Source: Auanema rhodensis (lineage: Eukaryota > Animalia > Nematoda). From it: a stretch of 64,000 bases of DNA. The DNA lies in assembly GCA_964057225.1 (NCBI GenBank), contig OZ059894.1:15934001-15998000 (forward strand), given 5' to 3'. The translations under genes were made by a program, and so were the position numbers. The notes beneath the pieces were generated by a model that did not search any database, had not been told where the DNA came from, and saw only the letters and a program-made list of their open reading frames with translations. Position 1 is the first letter of the stretch. Each line of letters begins with the position of its first letter. Shown here one piece after another: positions 1-64,000 of the stretch.

Positions 1-992
1 AAGAAGCAGTAGGTGAACTCAAGTCTATGGAGAGTGGGGAAAACTGACCAAAAGAACTAGAAGGAGAAGGTGTATTGGGTACAACAGATTCCCTGTAAGG
101 TACATATCCGGACTGCTGTGGTCTAGTGTTCAAACGAATTGGACCACCGGAACATCCTTTGAAGGACTGTTGCAGCTCTTTGCGAGTAATGGGTACCTTC
201 AAATAAGCAGTTAAATTATAGAAAATCTAATTTGGAACTTGCCTTCTTCTGCTGGTAACTACAGTTAACTTCCATGTCGACAACAAACTTCTCAGCTCTT
301 TTTGCCAACTCAGAAATGGTAGGTGTTAGGAAAAAGAACTAAAGGAATACAGAATTAATTGATTGTTCGATGTTTAAACTAACCTCGTGAAGAATGCCAA
401 CATCCTTTGGTACAATCTTCTTAGCTCTTTTGGGAAGCCCTAGTACTTGACCGACTGTGGGTGTTTGGTACTTTACTGAAGACAATTTAAAATATAAGAC
501 TCAAAATAGAAATTATAAAATACCTGGAGGAGCAACTTTCACGGGAGCGGAATGCTTAGGAAAGTTGGCATATGTAGCAGGAGTTTGAACCATATGATTC
601 ATGGACTTCACTGCTAGAGGAGAGTATGGAAGAGGTTGCTTTCCATAGTTTTGCTGATAATAATCCTGACTACGCTGAACTTGATTCGGAGTAGAAACAT
701 TCATAAGCACTGGCTGCACTTGGTTCATAGCAGTGTAACCCTGTTGATTCAATCCACAATCTCGTGCCATAGATGTCTGTTGTACTGGCATTTGTCTCAT
801 ATTCATCTGAGGCATAGTTTGGTATGGGAATTGTGAATATTGTTGCTGATATTGGAAAGTATTCTGATAATACAGTCCATCATTCACTGAACGTCCGGAA
901 GAAGATAAAGGCTTTTGATAAGGATTGAAATGAATGCTTTTATGATGATTGTTAACTTGATTGTCGTACATAGAATAAGTTCCGTAAGTCAT
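1..992 (-). CDS. Orphan Q/N/Y-rich, S/P-rich protein, left copy (3' end runs off the window)
   Basis: Mirror image of the spliced gene at 2558-3575; ATG at 992. Confidence 0.75.
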
Positions 993-3549
993 CCTCTGAA
1001 ATAAGTCGTAAGTAATACAACATGTATCTAAGAAACATGAACGAAATAACACGGAAGTCGAGCAGAACTCGGAAAAGGCAGTAGCAGACAAGCTGAAAGA
1101 ATGAAGATGATATATCTGACTGACATAAATGGTACAGGATAATAGTGGGAGGAGCTTACAGTCGGAATTACCAACTTTTTCATGAACACCATAGTAACTA
1201 TGAACTCTTGAGAATATAAATTGTGAATAAAAACACGAGTAAAAATGAACTAGACTGATTAATATCTGTTAACAATTTCCACAAATTTTAGATTAACAAT
1301 TTGTTTCCATACATTATTTGAAAACATCATCACCAATCGTGGAATATCATTATTAATTCATCACTAATAGTAACATATCATAACTTCAATCATTTTTTTC
1401 AATCAATTTTTTGTACACACTGAAAACAATTCCTTTTTACCTTTTTTTCAATAGTATGCAAGCTCCATAAGCTTTTTAGCAAATTAACAACTGATTTGTC
1501 GTATCCCAAACCACAAAGTCAAATTTATGTTCACAAAACAGAAGATGAAAGAGAACTTTTGACCAAGCAAGTTCAAAACACTAAGCCTACATTGTATTAT
1601 AACTCAGAGTATTTTCACGCTTGTTTGTGAGCCGATGTACATATTGACAGCCTGACCTGTTCCAAATGAACAAGCGGAATCATGCTTTGACAAGGGTGTT
1701 ATTTAATTTTTCTGCAACATGTTTGAGATTATGAACACATTTATTACAGAATCAGAAAATGGTATTTTAATTAATATTAACAAAAATATGAATGAAATCA
1801 TAACAATAGATATATTATTTGTTAATATCGCTATCACATTGAAATTATGCGGGAAGCAATATTGATTACAAATAAATACTTTGATCTATGAGAAACACGC
1901 GGATTTTCTGTAATCGAAATCTTGCCAATGTAGTAACGTTTGATATAATCCATAAATTTTTTTGATGTAAAATATTATTTGTTTATAAAGAAGCTGTCCC
2001 AGTGATTGTTATAATTTGAGAATAAATTTGACTTTGTGGTTTGGGATACGACAAATCAGTTGTTAATTTGCTAAAAAGCTTATGGAGCTTGCATACTATT
2101 GAAAAAAAGGTAAAAAGGAATTGTTTTCAGTGTGTACAAAAAATTGATTGAAAAAAATGATTGAAGTTATGATATGTTACTATTAGTGATGAATTAATAA
2201 TGATATTCCACGATTGGTGATGATGTTTTCAAATAATGTATGGAAACAAATTGTTAATCTAAAATTTGTGGAAATTGTTAACAGATATTAATCAGTCTAG
2301 TTCATTTTTACTCGTGTTTTTATTCACAATTTATATTCTCAAGAGTTCATAGTTACTATGGTGTTCATGAAAAAGTTGGTAATTCCGACTGTAAGCTCCT
2401 CCCACTATTATCCTGTACCATTTATGTCAGTCAGATATATCATCTTCATTCTTTCAGCTTGTCTGCTACTGCCTTTTCCGAGTTCTGCTCGACTTCCGTG
2501 TTATTTCGTTCATGTTTCTTAGATACATGTTGTATTACTTACGACTTATTTCAGAGGATGACTTACGGAACTTATTCTATGTACGACAATCAAGTTAACA
2601 ATCATCATAAAAGCATTCATTTCAATCCTTATCAAAAGCCTTTATCTTCTTCCGGACGTTCAGTGAATGATGGACTGTATTATCAGAATACTTTCCAATA
2701 TCAGCAACAATATTCACAATTCCCATACCAAACTATGCCTCAGATGAATATGAGACAAATGCCAGTACAACAGACATCTATGGCACGAGATTGTGGATTG
2801 AATCAACAGGGTTACACTGCTATGAACCAAGTGCAGCCAGTGCTTATGAATGTTTCTACTCCGAATCAAGTTCAGCGTAGTCAGGATTATTATCAGCAAA
2901 ACTATGGAAAGCAACCTCTTCCATACTCTCCTCTAGCAGTGAAGTCCATGAATCATATGGTTCAAACTCCTGCTACATATGCCAACTTTCCTAAGCATTC
3001 CGCTCCCGTGAAAGTTGCTCCTCCAGGTATTTTATAATTTCTATTTTGAGTCTTATATTTTAAATTGTCTTCAGTAAAGTACCAAACACCCACAGTCGGT
3101 CAAGTACTAGGGCTTCCCAAAAGAGCTAAGAAGATTGTACCAAAGGATGTTGGCATTCTTCACGAGGTTAGTTTAAACATCGAACAATCAATTAATTCTG
3201 TATTCCTTTAGTTCTTTTTCCTAACACCTACCATTTCTGAGTTGGCAAAAAGAGCTGAGAAGTTTGTTGTCGACATGGAAGTTAACTGTAGTTACCAGCA
3301 GAAGAAGGCAAGTTCCAAATTAGATTTTCTATAATTTAACTGCTTATTTGAAGGTACCCATTACTCGCAAAGAGCTGCAACAGTCCTTCAAAGGATGTTC
3401 CGGTGGTCCAATTCGTTTGAACACTAGACCACAGCAGTCCGGATATGTACCTTACAGGGAATCTGTTGTACCCAATACACCTTCTCCTTCTAGTTCTTTT
3501 GGTCAGTTTTCCCCACTCTCCATAGACTTGAGTTCACCTACTGCTTCTT
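1..3549. repeat. Large inverted repeat (palindrome): arms 1-1528 and 2022-3549, 493 bp unique spacer; left arm probably continues beyond the window edge
   Basis: Position x mirrors 3550-x. ORFs 513..1091(-) and 2459..3037(+) translate identically, and base 1 onward (aagaagcagtaggtgaactc) is the reverse complement of the sequence ending at 3549. The match stops at 1528/2022. Confidence 0.97.
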
Positions 3550-3575
3550 CTGGAAGTCTGTCGCCATATATGTAA
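2558..3575 (+). CDS. Orphan low-complexity protein, ~292 aa, 4 exons (2558-3026, 3075-3166, 3212-3307, 3354-3575), right copy
   Basis: TTTCAG (possible trans-splice acceptor) 3 nt before the ATG. Three 45-48 nt introns splice in frame (the third is GC-AG) to give MTYGTYSMY...PPVKYQTPTVGQVLGLPKR...KKVPITRKEL...SLSPYM*. AATAAA at 3790. Confidence 0.8.
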
Positions 3576-3650
3576 ATAGTTTATACTTGTAATTTAAATA
3601 TTTTTTTTATATTCTTCTTGTACTGTACTTATTTCCATTTACGTATCCAA

Positions 3651-3671
3651 ACTAACTTGTACTATACTAAC
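3651..3671 (+). promoter_or_regulatory. Candidate 3' UTR translational control cluster: two GLD-1/STAR-type ACUAAC sites flanking an FBF/PUF-type UGUACUAUA
   Basis: actaac 3651-3656, tgtactata 3658-3666, tactaac 3665-3671; also TGTAAATA over the stop codon (3571-3578). Confidence 0.45.
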
Positions 3672-4419
3672 TATACGACAACTCTCTCAAATTTTCTTTT
3701 GTTTTCGTCTCCAATCGGTGCTTATGTTCTGCCCTACAGGTAGTATTTCTTGTTTTCTCATATCCTATCATCAAATGATGTAAAAATCTAATAAAATCGT
3801 AATAATTTTTTGCTATGTCCAATTATTTCATCTGGGAATTGTATATCATACCATTTTAGAACTAACACTTTAGATATCTATTACATTTGTTAAATATAAT
3901 AAAACATGAACGTCATTATTTCTTTTTTCTATTATTAGCATCACCCTGCCTTTTCCAGATTTCACATGTATATCCCATTATCATTATTGTTAATTAGTTA
4001 TTCGATATGCTCTGTTCCAAGTCGAATAATCGTTTCTATTAATGAAAATATGAGAAATAACAAATCGTTTTGCGTTTTAAATATGATAAGAATAGGAAAG
4101 TGTTCATACTTACATACTTCAGAGTTTAAGTTTGGTTTATCAATAGGAATCGAAGATTAGTATTAAAATTCTTAATCAAAGATTATAGATTTCGTTTGCG
4201 TTGAAATGACTATGAAGTGGTGGAAAGAGTTTTTAACAGCAATTGATGAAAATACTTCAGAAAACTAGACAGTGGAAAAGCTTAGATTGATATGGAAATT
4301 AAAAGCGACATTTTATAGTGAGCTTTATTCTTTAATCTGTTTGATAAGGATATGTATATATGATAAGAATTTTATGTAGTGTTACTATATTCGACTCCAA
4401 TTTTACTTTTCGTTCAAAT

Positions 4420-5901
4420 ATGCTGGGTAAAATTGTGGCAATAAGCTTGTTATGCATAGGTGCAGTGTCTTCTGATTGTCGTGTTTGCACTTCAGGAGGT
4501 AGCAAGTCAGTTTTTTAGTCAAATTTGTCTTCTTGTTTTAAAATTTTCATATTTATGTTTGCAGGTGGTGTGTAGAAAAGGAAACATGTGGCGCATCTGT
4601 TTTAGGGTGCAAAACTCATATTTCTGTATCAATCTTACATTAAAATAATGTTTCAACAACCTAGTTCAGGATCCTCTGAATTGCCCTGTGCCAATGCACC
4701 CAGGATACGAATACAATGATACTTTTACAAGAAATGTTGTTTTGCCTCTAATCACTGGTGCGTACGCACTACCAGATGCCAGACAATGCTTAAAGTAATC
4801 ATTTGTTACAGTCAATTGCTTGATTGAATATATTAATTGAATAGTTGCATTCTTTTTATAGAAATGCTCTCCCCACTACGACGTTTGATACAAATGTGAT
4901 TGTACAATGTTATGCACATGGTCCACGTGAGCATTCTTAGAAAATGAGTGAGATGAATTGCATATTTTCTTTTCAGATGACACTTGCCATGCTTATACCG
5001 CTTATGATCATGTTAAACAGCAGATCTATGTTGTTTTCGAAGGAACTGAAGGAAACCTACAGCTATCAGAAGAAATTTTGGCTTTCTTCCAGTGTGTAAT
5101 TAATTATTTTTCCCTCCAACTGTTTCTTTTACAGCAAGAAAAGAAATTTCTACAATCACGGACACGTCTTCGAGTACTTCTATGACGCATTTAACTTCTT
5201 ATGGAGTGGAGGACTAGAATATGCAGTTCGCAGTTTAAAATTCCGCTATCCACAATATGAGTTAGTTGTAAGTTTAGCTATAACTACAACCCTTTGATGA
5301 ATTTCCACCTATAAGGCTGTTGGACATTCTATGGGGGCTGCTATTTGCTCTGTCTTTGCTTCATATGTGCTAGAGACTAAAATGTATAAGCCTGAAAATG
5401 TGAAGTTGATCACTTTTGGACAACCAAGAACTGGTGATCGTAACTTCTCCATGTGGCATGATAGTACTGTAAGTATTAAGCAAAATTTTTAATAAGTATT
5501 TCTATCTAACCCAGTTCTTGTATTCGTATCGCGTAAATCATCACCGTGACCCTGCTCCTCATGTTCCACCTATGGGAGGTGCTGATGAAGTCTTCCATCA
5601 TCGTCATGAAATTTGGTTTGGCAATACTAAATGATGTAGTGTTTCAAACAGTTGATTATAGGTATAACAACGACATGAGCATCGGTCAGTCATATCAGGT
5701 ATGCCTTGAAGCTGACGGACCACACTGTAGCAACAAACAGGTGATTTTTTGAAGAATATTAAAGAATTAAAAAGAAATATATATGTATTTTAATTAGAAA
5801 ACTTTTCTTTTTAGATTGATGATGTCGGAAAAGATCATATTGTATATTTCAATGTTAATATGGATGACTGGTCAGACCAAAATTGTAAACCATTTAACTG
5901 A
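4420..5901 (+). CDS. Secreted class 3 lipase (Lipase_3) with a Cys-rich N-terminal module; multi-exon
   Basis: Signal peptide MLGKIVAISLLCIGAVSS; spliced motifs VVFEGT, VGHSMGA (GxSxG), TFGQPRTG, YRVNHHRDPAPHVPP, DHIVYF. Confidence 0.93.
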
Positions 5902-6952
5902 ATCGATTACAATACCAGTAGTCAAATAAATATCTGTTTCATTCAACTTTTTAATGCATAGGTTTTCAATGATAGCTGAAATTCTACAACGCAATAGAAA
6001 TAATGCTTCAGCGCAAGCAAAATTGTAGACTTCTTGTTTCTTTATTTGCTAAGAACATAAATTCAAACAATACAAAGGGCAGAAATATATAACATGGAAG
6101 ATGAGTGTGGAAGTCTAAAAATTAAAATTTTATTCTACGAATTTAAAAATACCAAGAATCAAAGTATTTTGAACTTCGAATGACCCACATATTTTCTATG
6201 TAAACTAGTATTGCTTAGTACAGTACTTGTTTAAATTTACTGAGGAATGACGGAAACTCAAATTTCGAGAACAATTTGGCAGTTTTCTCCGAAAACTTTA
6301 AAAAGCTTCGATCTTTGCCCCAAAAATATTCTGAATTGTTAGTAAATTATATTTATTTGGTTAAAAGATTTAAAATAGTAACCTGTAAGATGTACCACAT
6401 AGGTCTCACTGTTTTATGATACGCAAGTATTATGATAGCTGAATATTGAAATCAACATGATGGTGTAAATAACAATGAACAACATATTCAATAGAAATTT
6501 TAGCTGAATACAAAAAAATATCAAACACAACCGTTTGTGAGCGTCTTAAGTTTGCTAACATGACGTGATTCGCGTGAATATTACATGATATGTTAACGTT
6601 ATGAAAAGAATACAATTACAATCATTCTATTCAAATAGTCAAGTTCAAGCGTTTTTTTGATTATTGACACTAATTAATCAAATAGATATGAATCATAGCT
6701 GAAGTACCGGTCGTTATTTGGTCGTGTGCCGAAGCTCAAATGCCAAGCTGATCTTCAACTGGCCTTTGACATGTCTATTCAGTTTCATCTGTCTTTTGTA
6801 CTTGGCAAATATACTCAACATGCTAGCATATATTTGAGATTATTTACTCGTTTCTCAGACTATTTAAACGGGACAGTATCTTACTTAAATTTAGTCTAAC
6901 TTTGACAGAGCTTCTAGCATAGCTTCAGGTTTTTAACGACTCCTCAGCGAAT

Positions 6953-24726: not shown

Positions 24727-25178
24727 ATGATTTCTCATCTTCTCTTTGTTCTTCTAATCGTCCTCGTCTGCGCTGCTCTTAGCGAAGCTTATTATGGATA
24801 TGGTGGATACGGTGGATACGGAGGATACAGACGTAAGATTTCTCTTCATCCTAACATTTTTAAATGAAAATTATTCCTTTTTTCAAAATCTAAAATGCCA
24901 CTACTTTCCCGAATCAAACTATTCATACTTATTACTTAATGTTTTAGCCTACGGCGGATATGGTGGATATGGTGGATACAGATACGGTGGATACGGAGGA
25001 TACAGACGTAAGATTTCTCTTCATCCTAACATTTTTAAATGAAAATTCTTCCTTCTTTCAAAATCCAAAATACCGCTACTTTACCGAATCAAACTATTCA
25101 TACTTATTACTTAATGTTTTAGCCTACGGCGGATATGGCGGATACGGAGGATACCACCACTACCCATACTATGGATAA
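24727..25178 (+). CDS. Gly/Tyr-rich YGGYG peptide precursor (NLP-29/CNC-like antimicrobial or neuropeptide-like); exons 24727-24832, 24948-25007, 25123-25178
   Basis: TATAAA at ~24665. Spliced product MISHLLFVLLIVLVCAALSEA-YYGYGGYGGYGGYRPYGGYGGYGGYRYGGYGGYRPYGGYGGYGGYHHYPYYG*; the terminal Gly is an amidation signal. Confidence 0.9.
24806..25155. repeat. 175 bp tandem duplication of an exon+intron unit
   Basis: Introns 24833-24947 and 25008-25122 are both 115 nt and differ at only a few positions. Confidence 0.95.
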
Positions 25179-60324: not shown

Positions 60325-61023
60325 CAGTCCTGTGCAAAAAACCTCGGACAAAAATATCTTAGAGGCCCCAGAAACCCCTTCAAACTACAAAAAAATTTTT
60401 TTTTTAATTTCATAAGTTTCGTAATGTCACATAGTATATATTCAGTCAAAATATATGTTAATATAATGAAAATTGATTTCAATATTTTTTTCTAAATTTA
60501 TAAGGAAAAATAGTGTTTTTTGACTATTTTGAATAATTCATCTTAATATAACAAAATTTGAGATTAGGAACATGTTAATTCATTAAAAAATATTTTAAAA
60601 TGATTCTAAGCACAAAGCTCAATCAATAACTAAGTTTTTCCTATGGCATAGCTTCAAACAAGTAAGCTTCAGCATCTGAATCTTACTGAATATCTATGAA
60701 GATAACGTGGTTAACATACAACCAAATTCTCCCGTTTAAAAGAAAAATAGACGTTTAGTGTACTCCTAACATTCTATCAAAAGATTATTTCTGAAGTCTT
60801 GATGAAACTTCTGAAATTCAAGAAAGAAGACTTCTAGCAGTTTATGAAAATTTCGGAGACTCCAAAAAATACTTTTGAACATGATTTTCAAAACTTTAAA
60901 GATTTTTTCTGAATTCATTATCAATTTTTAACACTCAAAATGTATTTTTTCTGATTTTTTGTAGTTTGTCTGAGAAGGTATAAGGGATTCTAAAAGTTGT
61001 CCGAGGTTTTTTGCACATGACTG
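60325..61023. mobile_element. Non-autonomous Tc1/mariner-type DNA transposon (MITE), 699 bp
   Basis: 27 bp TIRs cagtcctgtgcaaaaaacctcggacaa / ttgtccgaggttttttgcacatgactg (1 mismatch), CAGT termini, TA on both sides, subterminal inverted caaactacaaaaaa; no transposase ORF. Confidence 0.92.
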
Positions 61024-64000
61024 TAGTTATATGAGTATATATAGTATATAGTATATAGAGATATATGTGAAATGTTGTTGATCATTATAAATCATTCTAA
61101 TTATGTATGAAAATGATAGAACTTGTACAAAAAAAAAATTGATGGATTTGAATTTTGCAACGATTACTACAGGCTTTAGGGTTTTTAAAGTATTTAGCTT
61201 TCATTAGGTAATAAATGGCATTTCCAGGCATTGTTACTTTTATTTTTCTTTATTGTTTAGTCTAAAGCTTGTAAACAGGCTTAAAGAGAATAAGTGTGGC
61301 CCGCTATTGGCGATAAAAGGTTCTAAGTAGAAAAGATATAAAACTGATGCTAAAGGGGTGGTAGGGTGGGCGAATAAAAGTTTTTGTTGTGGTAGAGTAT
61401 GAGGATAGTGCGAAGAAGAATGCCAATTGTGTTATGTCTGTGGGTAATGATGACGTCAGAGTATGATATAGAATAGGATGAACTTGAAAGAACTTCAAAA
61501 ATCTATATGATATACGATATATAAGTCATTTAGCAACCGAGTATATGATGCTTACAAATACAAATTAAGAAAAAGTTTACGTGAATATCACGTGATACAA
61601 TAAGATTTATGCTAATTTATAAAAAATAATAAGAAGATGGGAAAAATGATTGTTTTGATGAAATATTGTATATATCAGAAGCCATTTATATATATTTTTT
61701 TCATATTTATAATAGTTCAAATTACCTAAATATATCTTAATTATACTGAATAATGAATTACAAATTGTTTTTTTTCTGCACAGCTTGCAATCTGAAATTC
61801 TTATTTTTAAAGCAAATTCTGTCGAAAATGACAATACAATAATGTTTTATCTAATATGTTGTATATATAAAATTGAAAAAGTATCTGAAATTCCGATAAT
61901 TTTTTAATTTTTTCTTACAAATATTCACAATTTTAATTCTGGCTCATGTACCTCATTGTCGTTGAAGTTATGGCCATTGTTCAACAAAAACGTTTTAAGC
62001 TAGTTATGATGTCATATGTCCATATCCTTTCTTTAGTTCATTATTATAATATATAGTTTTTTCTTCTCATAATTTATACATTTTCTTGTTTAAGCCACTA
62101 AATGAAGTAGAGAGAGAGGGAAAGAATATGGGGGTGAATGTATTGTATTCTGATGTCAACTAGTGTCTCTATTCAATTTCGAATTTTCAATGCTTAGTTT
62201 TTTTCTTTTTTTTCCATAATAACACGCTTGAAAAAAAAATTGTCCTTAGACCAAATTCACTCGTTTTTTTCCTTTTACATGTCCAGAAAGTAGTCTAGTT
62301 TTCTACTAAATGAGTATTTTCATACCATGTTTGTCTGATATCGTATACATCCATACATATGTGTGTTTTCATTGAATTTTTCGTATTTTCACTATTTTAG
62401 TTAAAGAAATGCTGTTTGAGTTAGTAAATTTATACTAACTATATGTTGAATTTTCATACAGAATATCTCGTATAATCTTAGATCTTCAAGCGTTAGTCGT
62501 TAGCTTCCCGGCTTTATTAGCTTGTTGCTAGCCACCTCAGCTATCTAGGTTACGGAGATCAGTCACCCATGATTACCCTCTCTAGACCTTGAAAGTCTAG
62601 AAAAGACAAAATTTGAATTTATTATTTTCTTACAAAATTCATTGTTGTTTTTCATTTTGGCATAAGTTCTTATATGAATCTAAATTAAGTTAAAATATTT
62701 GGAATCTAATATATATTTTTTTAAAATTCTTTATTTTAAAAAAAAATTAAGGCGATAATTTATTTTATATTTATCTTATTGACTTACTTCCGTCTTGTTT
62801 TTCTATCTATCTCTTTGGTAAAGTATTAAAAAAAGGAAAAAACAGCAGAATGTAAGATCTTCACGGACGATACAACGTGCATATTCACGCGTGGGATAGA
62901 AGCATGACAAGCTGCTGAAGTAAGCGATGTAGCGTGTTTAGCCAGTAAGAATGAAGAGAGAAGCTGAAGCCAATTAAAAAATCTGAAGAGCCAGGAAGGA
63001 GAGATATGGAAATAAAAGAAATTTTGATAATCAGAATGAAGTGAAATGTTTACAGTTGTTCAATTCAATTAAAGAATTGATGTGATGGCTTTCAGATTTC
63101 ATAGTTTAAAAATAACATTGATCTAATTAAAAACAATTTTTATTGCACAAACTATTTGTATTTATATAATGTTTATTTTCTTTTTTTTCATTAATTTTAA
63201 TTATTTTTTTATTATTTCTATGCTTATTACCTGAATGATATCGCTTAGCCATTCTAGGAGAGCAGGCGGTTAATGCTCTTGCTGTCTCTCTTTCTCTTAC
63301 TTTGTCATTTTCTTTCACTACCCTTCTTCCAATTGTTCTCTAAGTTGCTCTCTTTGAATTTTGCTACTGACCCTTTCCGTCTATGTTAGATTTTCGAGAA
63401 GAAGAGAGATAAAGGGATATACTAGCTCATATAACCCTCGGGGTGTGGTAGGTCCAGAAGTGACAGAGAGATAGAAAGAAAGGGGAAATATAGAGGGAGG
63501 GAAAGAAAACGAAAAGAGAGAAGAGTCGAATGTTGTCCCCGCATACATATATACAGAGAGAATGTTGCCAAGTATTGATCTCTTTTTCTCTTCCTTTCCT
63601 TCTCTCTCCAATTTTCTTTAGCACTCAGTGCATCTCTCCGTTTCCTCTACATGGGGTAACAGGAGCCAGACGGCCGATGGCACCAGAGAGACAGAGATCA
63701 CGAGGCAGAGTGAGTGATGAGAGAAACAGAGCGAGAAAGAAACAGAGAAAATACGATACAAGCTGTCTGAATGTCAGTAGTGAAGAGACTGATTGAGAGT
63801 GAAAGAAGCAGAGCCAAAGCTAAAGCCCGTAGAACCAAGGCTTTCCGAGGTGAATGGATGTGAAGCCGAGCAACCGACTAGCTGACAGGGAGAGAGAGAT
63901 CAGAGACGCAGATGGCACACTAGGCATAATGCCCGAGGGCGAATAGTCGCTCTGCTACTGCTTCTCCTGCTACTCTACAAAGAAAGCAAGCAAGCAGGCT

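Follow-up and report, generated by a model that had tools for sequence, protein, structure and literature searches.

A head-to-head palindromic gene pair with letter-identical 1.9-kb arms in the nematode Auanema rhodensis

Palindromic gene pairs are known from Caenorhabditis, where Zhao and colleagues described the hsp-70 pair F44E5.4/F44E5.5 and the hsp-16 locus T27E4.8/.3-.9/.2 (Zhao et al. 2007, PLoS One 2:e262; PMC1803023). Such pairs can be 100% identical, are separated by spacers of 126-414 bp, and are conserved between Caenorhabditis species (PMC1803023). Here, we analyzed a stretch of 64,000 nucleotides of the Auanema rhodensis genome (the window; contig OZ059894.1, here C1, positions 15,934,001 to 15,998,000), at the left edge of which lies a pair of genes arranged in the same manner. 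The locus is a clean example of this known Caenorhabditis type of arrangement and constitutes no new phenomenon or category. What the locus adds is a fully resolved, gene-bearing palindrome outside Caenorhabditis.

In a base-by-base comparison with the left flank added, the palindrome consists of two perfect arms of 1934 bp each that are 100% reverse-complementary. The left arm, on the minus strand, covers window positions -405..1528 (C1:15933595-15935528) and carries gene copy A; positions 1..1528 fall inside the window and the remaining 405 bp lie to the left of its start. The right arm, on the plus strand, covers 2022..3955 (C1:15936022-15937955) and carries gene copy B. Between them is a central spacer of 493 bp (1529..2021, no strand), and any position x in one arm mirrors position 3550-x in the other. 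The initial annotation of this DNA had described arms of at least 1528 bp around a 493-bp spacer and had ended the feature at 3575. The spacer length was exact, while the arms proved longer; position 3575 is a stop codon, and the arm continues to 3955. That annotation had also noticed no mismatches between the arms, and alignment of the arms together with extension to the left of the window bears this out, as there are none in 1934 bp. Complete identity between the arms extends to the introns, the 536 bp upstream, and the 380 bp that follow the stop codon. A repeat search inside the window alone returned arms at 1-1533 and 2017-3549, and with 1.5 kb of extra left sequence the arms reached 1939 nt with 483 nt between them. 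This 1939-nt alignment contains only two mismatches, both at the inner tip, which leaves a perfect length of 1934 bp.

All four borders are sharp: identity of 100% gives way to random similarity, and the sequence outside shows no decayed homology. Borders of this sharpness are also what a single young event is expected to leave. Outside the arms, the left and right flanks differ from each other, are each unique, and share no inverted similarity; the left holds a SART-1-like gene and the right other ORFs. The four junctions show no meaningful microhomology; the longest, at the inner tip, is no more than 3 nt. When we searched the 181-Mb genome with the whole arm, exon 1, exon 4, and the conserved block of the 3'UTR, each gave two copies and none further, and within 274 kb of contiguous sequence around the locus the palindrome is the sole non-satellite repeat longer than 600 bp. 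The GC content of non-coding arm DNA is 0.27-0.31, compared with 0.30-0.34 in the spacer and flanks, and the GC enrichment of the conversion type that was sought in non-coding arm DNA was not found. A perfect inverted match of 1934 bp cannot arise by chance, and the head-to-head palindromic gene pair is a real structure.

The spacer has no second occurrence anywhere in the genome. We found no inverted similarity between its two halves, its DNA fold is not special (z -0.33), and it contains neither an open frame longer than 60 aa nor a transposase-like ORF. An Rfam search of window positions 1-6000, spacer included, gave no match. Together with the mirrored upstream sequences on either side, the spacer makes up a shared upstream region of 1.56 kb between the divergent copies, of which the central 493 bp are unique.

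Each arm holds a complete gene unit, with 536 bp of upstream sequence (estimated at about 540 bp in the initial annotation), a four-exon gene of approximately 292 aa, and a 3'UTR with two AATAAA signals. Copies A (minus strand) and B (plus strand) are divergent, and transcription runs outward from the centre. The upstream region of copy B (2022..2557, plus strand) was duplicated with the gene, and its mirror in the left arm is at 993-1528. At its end, 3 nt ahead of the ATG, stands a ttatttcag acceptor that resembles a trans-splice site. Exon 1 of copy B (2558..3026, plus strand; 469 nt, phase 1) encodes a Q/N/Y/M-rich N-terminus, exon 2 (3075..3166, plus strand; 92 nt) a basic PKRAKK motif, and exon 3 (3212..3307, plus strand) is 96 nt long. 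The intron that follows (3308-3353, plus strand) is of the GC-AG type, with the donor gcaagt. Exon 4 (3354..3575, plus strand; 222 nt including the stop codon) encodes a conserved GGPIRLNTR motif and an S/P-rich tail. Downstream, at 3754..3850 on the plus strand, lies the conserved 3'UTR block, which includes the AATAAA at 3790. On the minus strand, exon 1 of copy A (524..992) was recovered as a 100% identical genome match at C1:15934525-15934992, and exons 2 (384..475) and 3 (243..338) are the mirrors of 3075-3166 and 3212-3307 in the perfect arms. Exon 4 of copy A occupies 1..196 of the window (genome match C1:15933978-15934196, 100% identical); its final 25 nt and the 3'UTR lie to the left of the window.

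The initial annotation took the gene for an orphan, which is not strictly the case. One clear ortholog was detected, CAI4220774.1 (P0001) of Auanema melissensis. In a HMMER search, this protein was the one true match to exon 1 (E 1.7e-13). Two other HMMER matches of exon 1 were to repetitive, compositionally biased proteins and were treated as spurious. Word-index protein searches with exon 1 in its open frame, with the whole of CAI4220774.1, and with its residues 188-327 returned the A. melissensis protein or nothing. Exact-product look-ups with the exon-1 ORFs of the window and of the A. melissensis contig gave no further contigs, and a cluster look-up gave a single member. The ortholog has the same four-exon structure, with exon lengths of 571/95/96/222 nt against 469/92/96/222 nt here, and thereby confirms the four-exon model that had been read from the window for each divergent copy. 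Exon 3, of equal length (96 nt) in both species, aligns over the full length of its translation, and protein identity is 45% for exon 1 (against residues 1-190 of the ortholog), 67% for exon 2, and 62% for exon 4. The A. melissensis gene likewise has a ccttcag 3 nt before its ATG.

Between the two species, synonymous sites are saturated (pS 0.73-0.96) and dN is approximately 0.35. As judged from coding sequence, the comparison shows a protein under purifying selection and, with it, a primarily protein-coding gene. At the DNA level, few stretches can be aligned, and these are 72-83% identical. The 3'UTR block is better conserved than any coding stretch in this comparison, with 83% identity over 102 nt to positions 1786-1883 of the A. 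melissensis contig and approximately 60 nt that are nearly identical. Folded as a consensus of the two sequences available, the block forms a weak structure (-5.25 kcal/mol) and shows no compensatory pairs. Since its 3'UTR is conserved above its protein, the gene is a reasonable candidate for a post-transcriptionally controlled regulator. The protein itself is mostly disordered. Pfam searches with the four exon translations and with the A. melissensis ortholog gave no family match, and nothing usable was retrieved when the ESM Atlas was searched with exon 4. AlphaFold2 modeling of CAI4220774.1, with the exon pieces as alignment rows, gave a model too poor to base a fold search on (mean pLDDT 51, pTM 0.20), in which a helical stretch at 198-269 is all that stands out. 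It is probably a nuclear protein. The output of a sigma-70 promoter and terminator scan was disregarded, as it is irrelevant to a eukaryote.

In A. melissensis, the ortholog occupies an unscaffolded short-read contig of 1956 bp (CALQYR020003680.1) by itself, where the gene is flanked by 480 bp on its upstream side and 354 bp on its downstream side, compared with 536 and 380 bp in the arm here. The 3' end of this contig aligns to approximately position 3910 of the window, 45 bp short of the end of the arm. The A. melissensis assembly was built from short-read de Bruijn-graph contigs with 3-8 kb mate-pair scaffolding and has an N50 of 405 kb (PMC9984802); it comprises 7,511 scaffolds, including many short contigs. 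A small singleton contig in an assembly this fragmented is by itself no proof of a repeat.

How old the duplication is, and whether its arms have been actively kept alike, can be weighed from these observations. The reading we lean towards, with somewhat better than even confidence, is that the inverted duplication is old and that its arms are held letter-identical by arm-to-arm gene conversion. The fuller version, in which the palindrome is ancient and common to A. melissensis, with 1.9-kb arms kept letter-identical by conversion across saturated synonymous divergence, we hold more tentatively, at a little under an even chance. A perfect two-copy repeat is expected to leave a contig whose extent nearly equals the arm, and the 1956-bp contig therefore hints at a collapsed repeat in that species too. 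Under this scenario, the inverted duplication would have taken place before the split from the A. melissensis lineage, and conversion between the arms would then keep both copies identical, as in the hsp-16 and F44E5.4/5 palindromes of C. elegans. The practical effect would be two identical, jointly regulated doses of a protein that is lineage-restricted, mostly disordered, and probably nuclear, with an mRNA that may be controlled through the strongly conserved 3'UTR element.

The strongest competitor is a real but very young palindrome, in which one inverted duplication, by template switching or fold-back repair, has yet to acquire a substitution and conversion is not needed. We regard this as a serious possibility, although clearly short of probable. 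It accounts for the complete lack of differences across 1934 bp that include introns and intergenic DNA, and for four sharp borders without decayed homology outside. Newborn duplicates in C. elegans are, moreover, often adjacent and inverted (PMC2728529). If mutation in A. rhodensis is assumed to proceed as in C. elegans, at 2.7e-9 per site per generation, arms without a single difference have a probability of 5% or more only for ages of up to approximately 2.9e5 generations. Palindromes of demonstrated old age, the hsp-16 locus among them, can also show perfect identity (PMC1803023). Furthermore, the A. melissensis ortholog lies on a singleton contig nearly equal in extent to the arm, and if that contig is a collapsed repeat, a young origin would require two independent duplications with the same borders. 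A recent inverted duplication and gene conversion were the two readings already offered in the initial annotation; they were the right pair, and the hint from A. melissensis favours conversion.

The same annotation named an amplification fold-back chimera as the main alternative. Perfect identity is the expected product of an assembly or amplification artefact in which a fold-back chimeric read or a mis-join creates a false inverted copy, but the locus fits that origin poorly. A fold-back read would mirror everything from the turning point to the end of the read or contig, whereas the mirror here leaves a 493-bp centre unmirrored and stops after 1934 bp, and the unique sequences that flank it outside are unrelated and hold different genes. 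No sequence similar to the spacer occurs elsewhere in the genome, the site lies 15.9 Mb (close to 16 Mb) into a contig of 24.7 Mb, far from either end, and no second duplication of this sort occurs within the surrounding 274 kb. A false copy would need two precise chimeric junctions with consensus coverage, and we consider it very unlikely.

More doubtful still as an account of the locus, although compatible with the other readings, is a hairpin-RNA function, in which a transcript across both arms would form a 1.9-kb dsRNA stem and supply endogenous siRNAs for regulation of the gene. Complementarity between the arms is perfect, but the genes are divergent and their own transcripts run outward and cannot hold both arms. 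The earlier suggestion of a read-through hairpin consequently fails for read-through from the genes themselves and stands only for a transcript that enters from a neighbour. The nearest long ORFs on the left (L004 8566-8880 and 9124-9480) do lie on the plus strand, are aimed into the palindrome, and end 115 bp before the arm; read-through from them would cover copy A in antisense, the spacer, and copy B in sense. Against this, two AATAAA signals stand at each arm end, there is no sequence mark of a promoter for a spanning transcript, and purifying selection on the protein shows the gene to be primarily protein-coding. The overall shape of long inverted termini flanking a short centre is shared with foldback-type and long-TIR DNA transposons, mobile elements whose terminal inverted repeats are very long, but an origin of the locus from such an element, with capture of a host gene, is extremely improbable. 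Elements of this type are expected in multiple copies, with target-site duplications and without host-gene structure, whereas this is a single locus in 181 Mb with no target-site duplication at its outer borders, no transposase-like ORF in a spacer whose longest open frame is 60 aa, and in each arm a host gene that is spliced in the ordinary way and has its ortholog in A. melissensis.

The gene is conserved, selected, and lineage-restricted, with a 3'UTR more conserved than its protein. Should the hint from A. melissensis hold, the two species would provide a two-lineage system for measuring the rates and tract lengths of arm-to-arm conversion at a locus of PCR size. If the palindrome is both ancient and shared, it would represent an actively maintained palindrome of a lineage-restricted regulator outside the stress response whose 3'UTR is unusually conserved, and selection would appear to act on the paired arrangement as such, by way of dosage or shared control.

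Among known systems, the ampliconic palindromes of primate X and Y chromosomes resemble this locus in their near-identical inverted arms, unique spacer, genes in both arms, and proposed concerted evolution. Their arms, which carry germline-expressed gene families, range from roughly 10 kb to over 1 Mb, and the type is not matched here, where 1.9-kb arms carry one gene each and the genome holds no further paralogs. The initial annotation had drawn a likeness to ampliconic germline genes, for which the small palindromic gene pairs of Caenorhabditis are the better comparison (PMC1803023). Newborn inverted duplicates in C. elegans (Katju and Lynch, as summarised in PMC2728529) are, like the pair here, adjacent and inverted, with zero synonymous divergence and a complete gene. 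Those duplicates are read as young, whereas the repeat unit of A. rhodensis may be present in a second species as well and would then be old. With the pairs of Zhao and colleagues, the locus shares kilobase-scale arms that contain whole genes and intergenic DNA and lie adjacent on opposite strands. Arm identity reaches up to 100% in those pairs and is 100% here, with spacers of 126-414 bp and 493 bp, respectively; their orientation is divergent or convergent, and here it is divergent. In both, identity between arms within a species (100% here) is far above the identity of orthologs between species, and gene conversion is the proposed means of maintenance. The presence of the palindrome in a second species is established for the Caenorhabditis pairs and only hinted at here, through the A. 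melissensis contig. Unlike those pairs, the one in A. rhodensis is not a heat-shock locus; its gene has a conserved 3'UTR and encodes a protein that is lineage-restricted and mostly disordered, and the host belongs to a different rhabditid lineage.

The start of the window falls within an inverted duplication that continues past it on the left (negative coordinates below). In the first 8 kb, a repeat search returned one inverted pair, 1–1533 versus 2017–3549, and the arms grew to 1939 nt each once 1.5 kb was added on the left. Base-by-base comparison of these arms found two mismatches, confined to the inner tip, and gave perfect arms of 1934 bp at −405 to 1528 and 2022 to 3955, separated by a 493-bp spacer (1529–2021); the entire palindrome is 4361 bp. 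The initial annotation recommended aligning the arms and extending leftward. Its spacer figure was matched exactly, and the arms of at least 1528 bp that it took to be identical are perfect beyond what the window displayed. Sensitive self-BLAST of the 30 kb around the palindrome revealed no inverted similarity, even weak, outside the arms. In Smith–Waterman comparisons against shuffled sequences, the two spacer halves were no more alike than random, and the outer flanks, compared over 400 and 1500 bp, were also at the random level.

The duplicated unit is a single complete transcription unit and nothing more. In the right arm, copy B (+ strand) has exons at 2558–3026, 3075–3166, 3212–3307, and 3354–3575 (stop codon included). 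It is preceded by 536 bp of upstream DNA, ending with a ttatttcag acceptor 3 nt 5' of the ATG, and followed by 380 bp of downstream DNA, where AATAAA occurs twice, at 3790 and about 3898. Short introns with a terminal ttcag separate the exons; intron 3 (3308–3353) has a GC donor (gcaagt), where the orthologous intron of A. melissensis has GT (gtaatt). The left arm is an exact mirror of the right (x maps to 3550 − x), so copy A (− strand) and copy B are transcribed in opposite, outward directions, in agreement with the divergent four-exon genes first described, and their ATGs are 1565 bp apart. Searches with exons 1 and 4 found no paralogs in this genome besides these two copies.

Homology searches were run on single exons of the spliced model. 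Pfam gave no family for the exon translations, a word-index protein search gave no relative, and an ESM Atlas search gave no usable match. An exhaustive HMMER search with exon 1 recovered one convincing relative (E = 1.7e-13), a 327-aa “unnamed protein product” (CAI4220774.1) from Auanema sp. JU1783, which is A. melissensis. With this ortholog, the gene is not a strict orphan, as it had been labeled. The short, ttcag-ending introns and an ortholog found in Auanema alone place the host among the rhabditid nematodes. The two genes agree in exon number (four) and phases, with exon lengths of 571/95/96/222 nt in A. melissensis versus 469/92/96/222 nt here. In the alignment, the translations of exons 1, 2, and 4 are 45%, 67%, and 62% identical to the ortholog; MAFFT put the short exon 3 in the wrong place, and its identity, about 56% across all 32 codons, was counted by hand from a separate translation. 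Judged from this sequence comparison, the gene is protein-coding and under purifying selection, because synonymous sites are saturated (pS 0.73–0.96) while dN is about 0.35, and it appears confined to a narrow lineage. The AlphaFold model of the ortholog is poor (mean pLDDT 51), with a helical stretch only at residues 198–269. The protein would be mostly disordered; besides its Q/N-rich N-terminus, it would have a short helical core and a basic PKRAKK motif.

Between the two species, DNA conservation peaks outside the coding sequence. A 3'UTR block (window 3754–3850 versus 1786–1883 of L009, the A. melissensis locus) is 83% identical over 102 nt, of which about 60 nt are nearly identical, and spans the AATAAA at 3790. 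In this genome it is present only in the two arms, its mirror copy lying left of the window. Such conservation points to post-transcriptional control. The block's weak consensus fold makes a structured RNA less likely than a binding region for a protein or miRNA.

The surrounding sequence has features of its own. An exon of the SART-1 family (tri-snRNP; 5299–5529, + strand, of the left flank, L004) lies about 4.5 kb beyond the left edge of the window, with a Pfam match (PF03343, E 6.7e-06) that is below the curated cutoff for a single exon; it could anchor a synteny search for the orthologous site in relatives. Elsewhere on the same contig (C1), two 171-bp satellite arrays (C1:15748071–15756915 and C1:15758931–15764691) face opposite ways, with about 2 kb between them. 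Adjoining units of the first, very uniform array are about 99% alike, and identity between the two arrays is about 88%. Tandem copies about 99% alike, with a period of about 200 bp, fill 5.5 kb at C1:15882924–15888426, and a 174-nt tandem repeat (two copies, 95% identity) lies at window 24806–25154. A dispersed family (82–88% identity) is found at window 54757–54903/60453–60599, window 60427–61025, and C1:15788267–15788811; one inverted pair, its members 5.5 kb from each other within AT-rich DNA (GC 0.21–0.29, 50–62 kb), may represent transposable-element ends.

At a mutation rate like that of C. elegans (2.7e-9), the probability of finding no difference across 1934 bp drops below 5% once the copies are older than about 2.9e5 generations. 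Therefore, either the event is younger than this or the arms have been homogenized. The initial annotation offered these same two readings; perfect identity demands one of them, and evidence internal to the locus leaves the choice undecided. Sharp arm borders fit one young event, but they are also seen in the conversion palindromes of humans and Caenorhabditis. Non-coding arm DNA has no GC enrichment. The A. melissensis assembly consists of short-read de Bruijn-graph contigs with 3–8 kb mate-pair scaffolding and an N50 of 405 kb (PMC9984802). In it, the ortholog, the one clue from outside the locus, is alone on an unscaffolded 1956-bp contig (CALQYR020003680.1). Upstream of the gene, this contig has 480 bp (536 bp in the arm here), and downstream 354 bp (380 bp in the arm); the contig's 3' end falls at window ~3910 in the alignment, which leaves 45 bp to the arm end. 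A perfect two-copy repeat collapses to exactly such a contig, omitted from scaffolds. Chance would not easily place both contig ends so near the arm borders; however, that assembly includes thousands of small scaffolds, which weakens this interpretation. On balance, we lean slightly toward an old palindrome kept by gene conversion; a young duplication is less probable.

The palindrome itself is very probably real. A fold-back chimera or assembly artefact is quite unlikely, judged from locus anatomy: the mirror image of a chimera runs from the turning point to the read end, whereas here the 493-bp center is unmirrored and unique in the genome, the arms end sharply after 1934 bp, and the outer flanks, both unique, are unrelated to each other and carry different genes (SART-1-like on the left, other ORFs on the right). 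Two exact chimeric junctions would be required, both carried into the consensus, at a site 15.9 Mb into a 24.7-Mb contig (genome of 181 Mb, 112 contigs). Among repeats longer than 600 bp, direct or inverted, the palindrome is also the sole non-satellite one across the surrounding 274 kb of contiguous sequence; the assembly is not locally littered with such structures. A hairpin locus feeding endo-siRNAs, which is compatible with the other readings, is unsupported and has a very slim chance of being correct. It needs a single transcript through both arms, but both genes' own transcripts run outward, so of the read-through first envisaged, only that from + strand ORFs on the left, which end 115 bp before the palindrome, could supply one. 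A transposon is highly unlikely, given the single locus, with no target-site duplication and no transposase.

The locus thus holds two identical, complete, divergent gene copies with a common 1.56-kb upstream interval. This arrangement would double and co-regulate gene dosage, arm-to-arm conversion would erase differences as they appear, and the mRNA may be regulated via the conserved 3'UTR block.

Comparable pairs are known from C. elegans, where newborn duplicates are often adjacent and inverted (PMC2728529). Zhao et al. (2007) described paralog pairs, divergent or convergent, in nearly perfect arms holding whole genes and intergenic DNA (PMC1803023). In their F44E5.4/5 palindrome the spacer is 126 bp; in the hsp-16 locus it is 414 bp, and the arms are 100% identical (PMC1803023). 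The palindrome structure is kept in C. remanei and C. briggsae with diverged sequence, and gene conversion was proposed to maintain it (PMC1803023). Primate ampliconic palindromes work similarly but differ from the present locus in scale and gene content. Of the four features that define the Zhao type, our locus has three; the fourth is the arrangement in a second species, and here the A. melissensis ortholog is on its lone 1956-bp contig. The present palindrome belongs to a type of structure already described in C. elegans.
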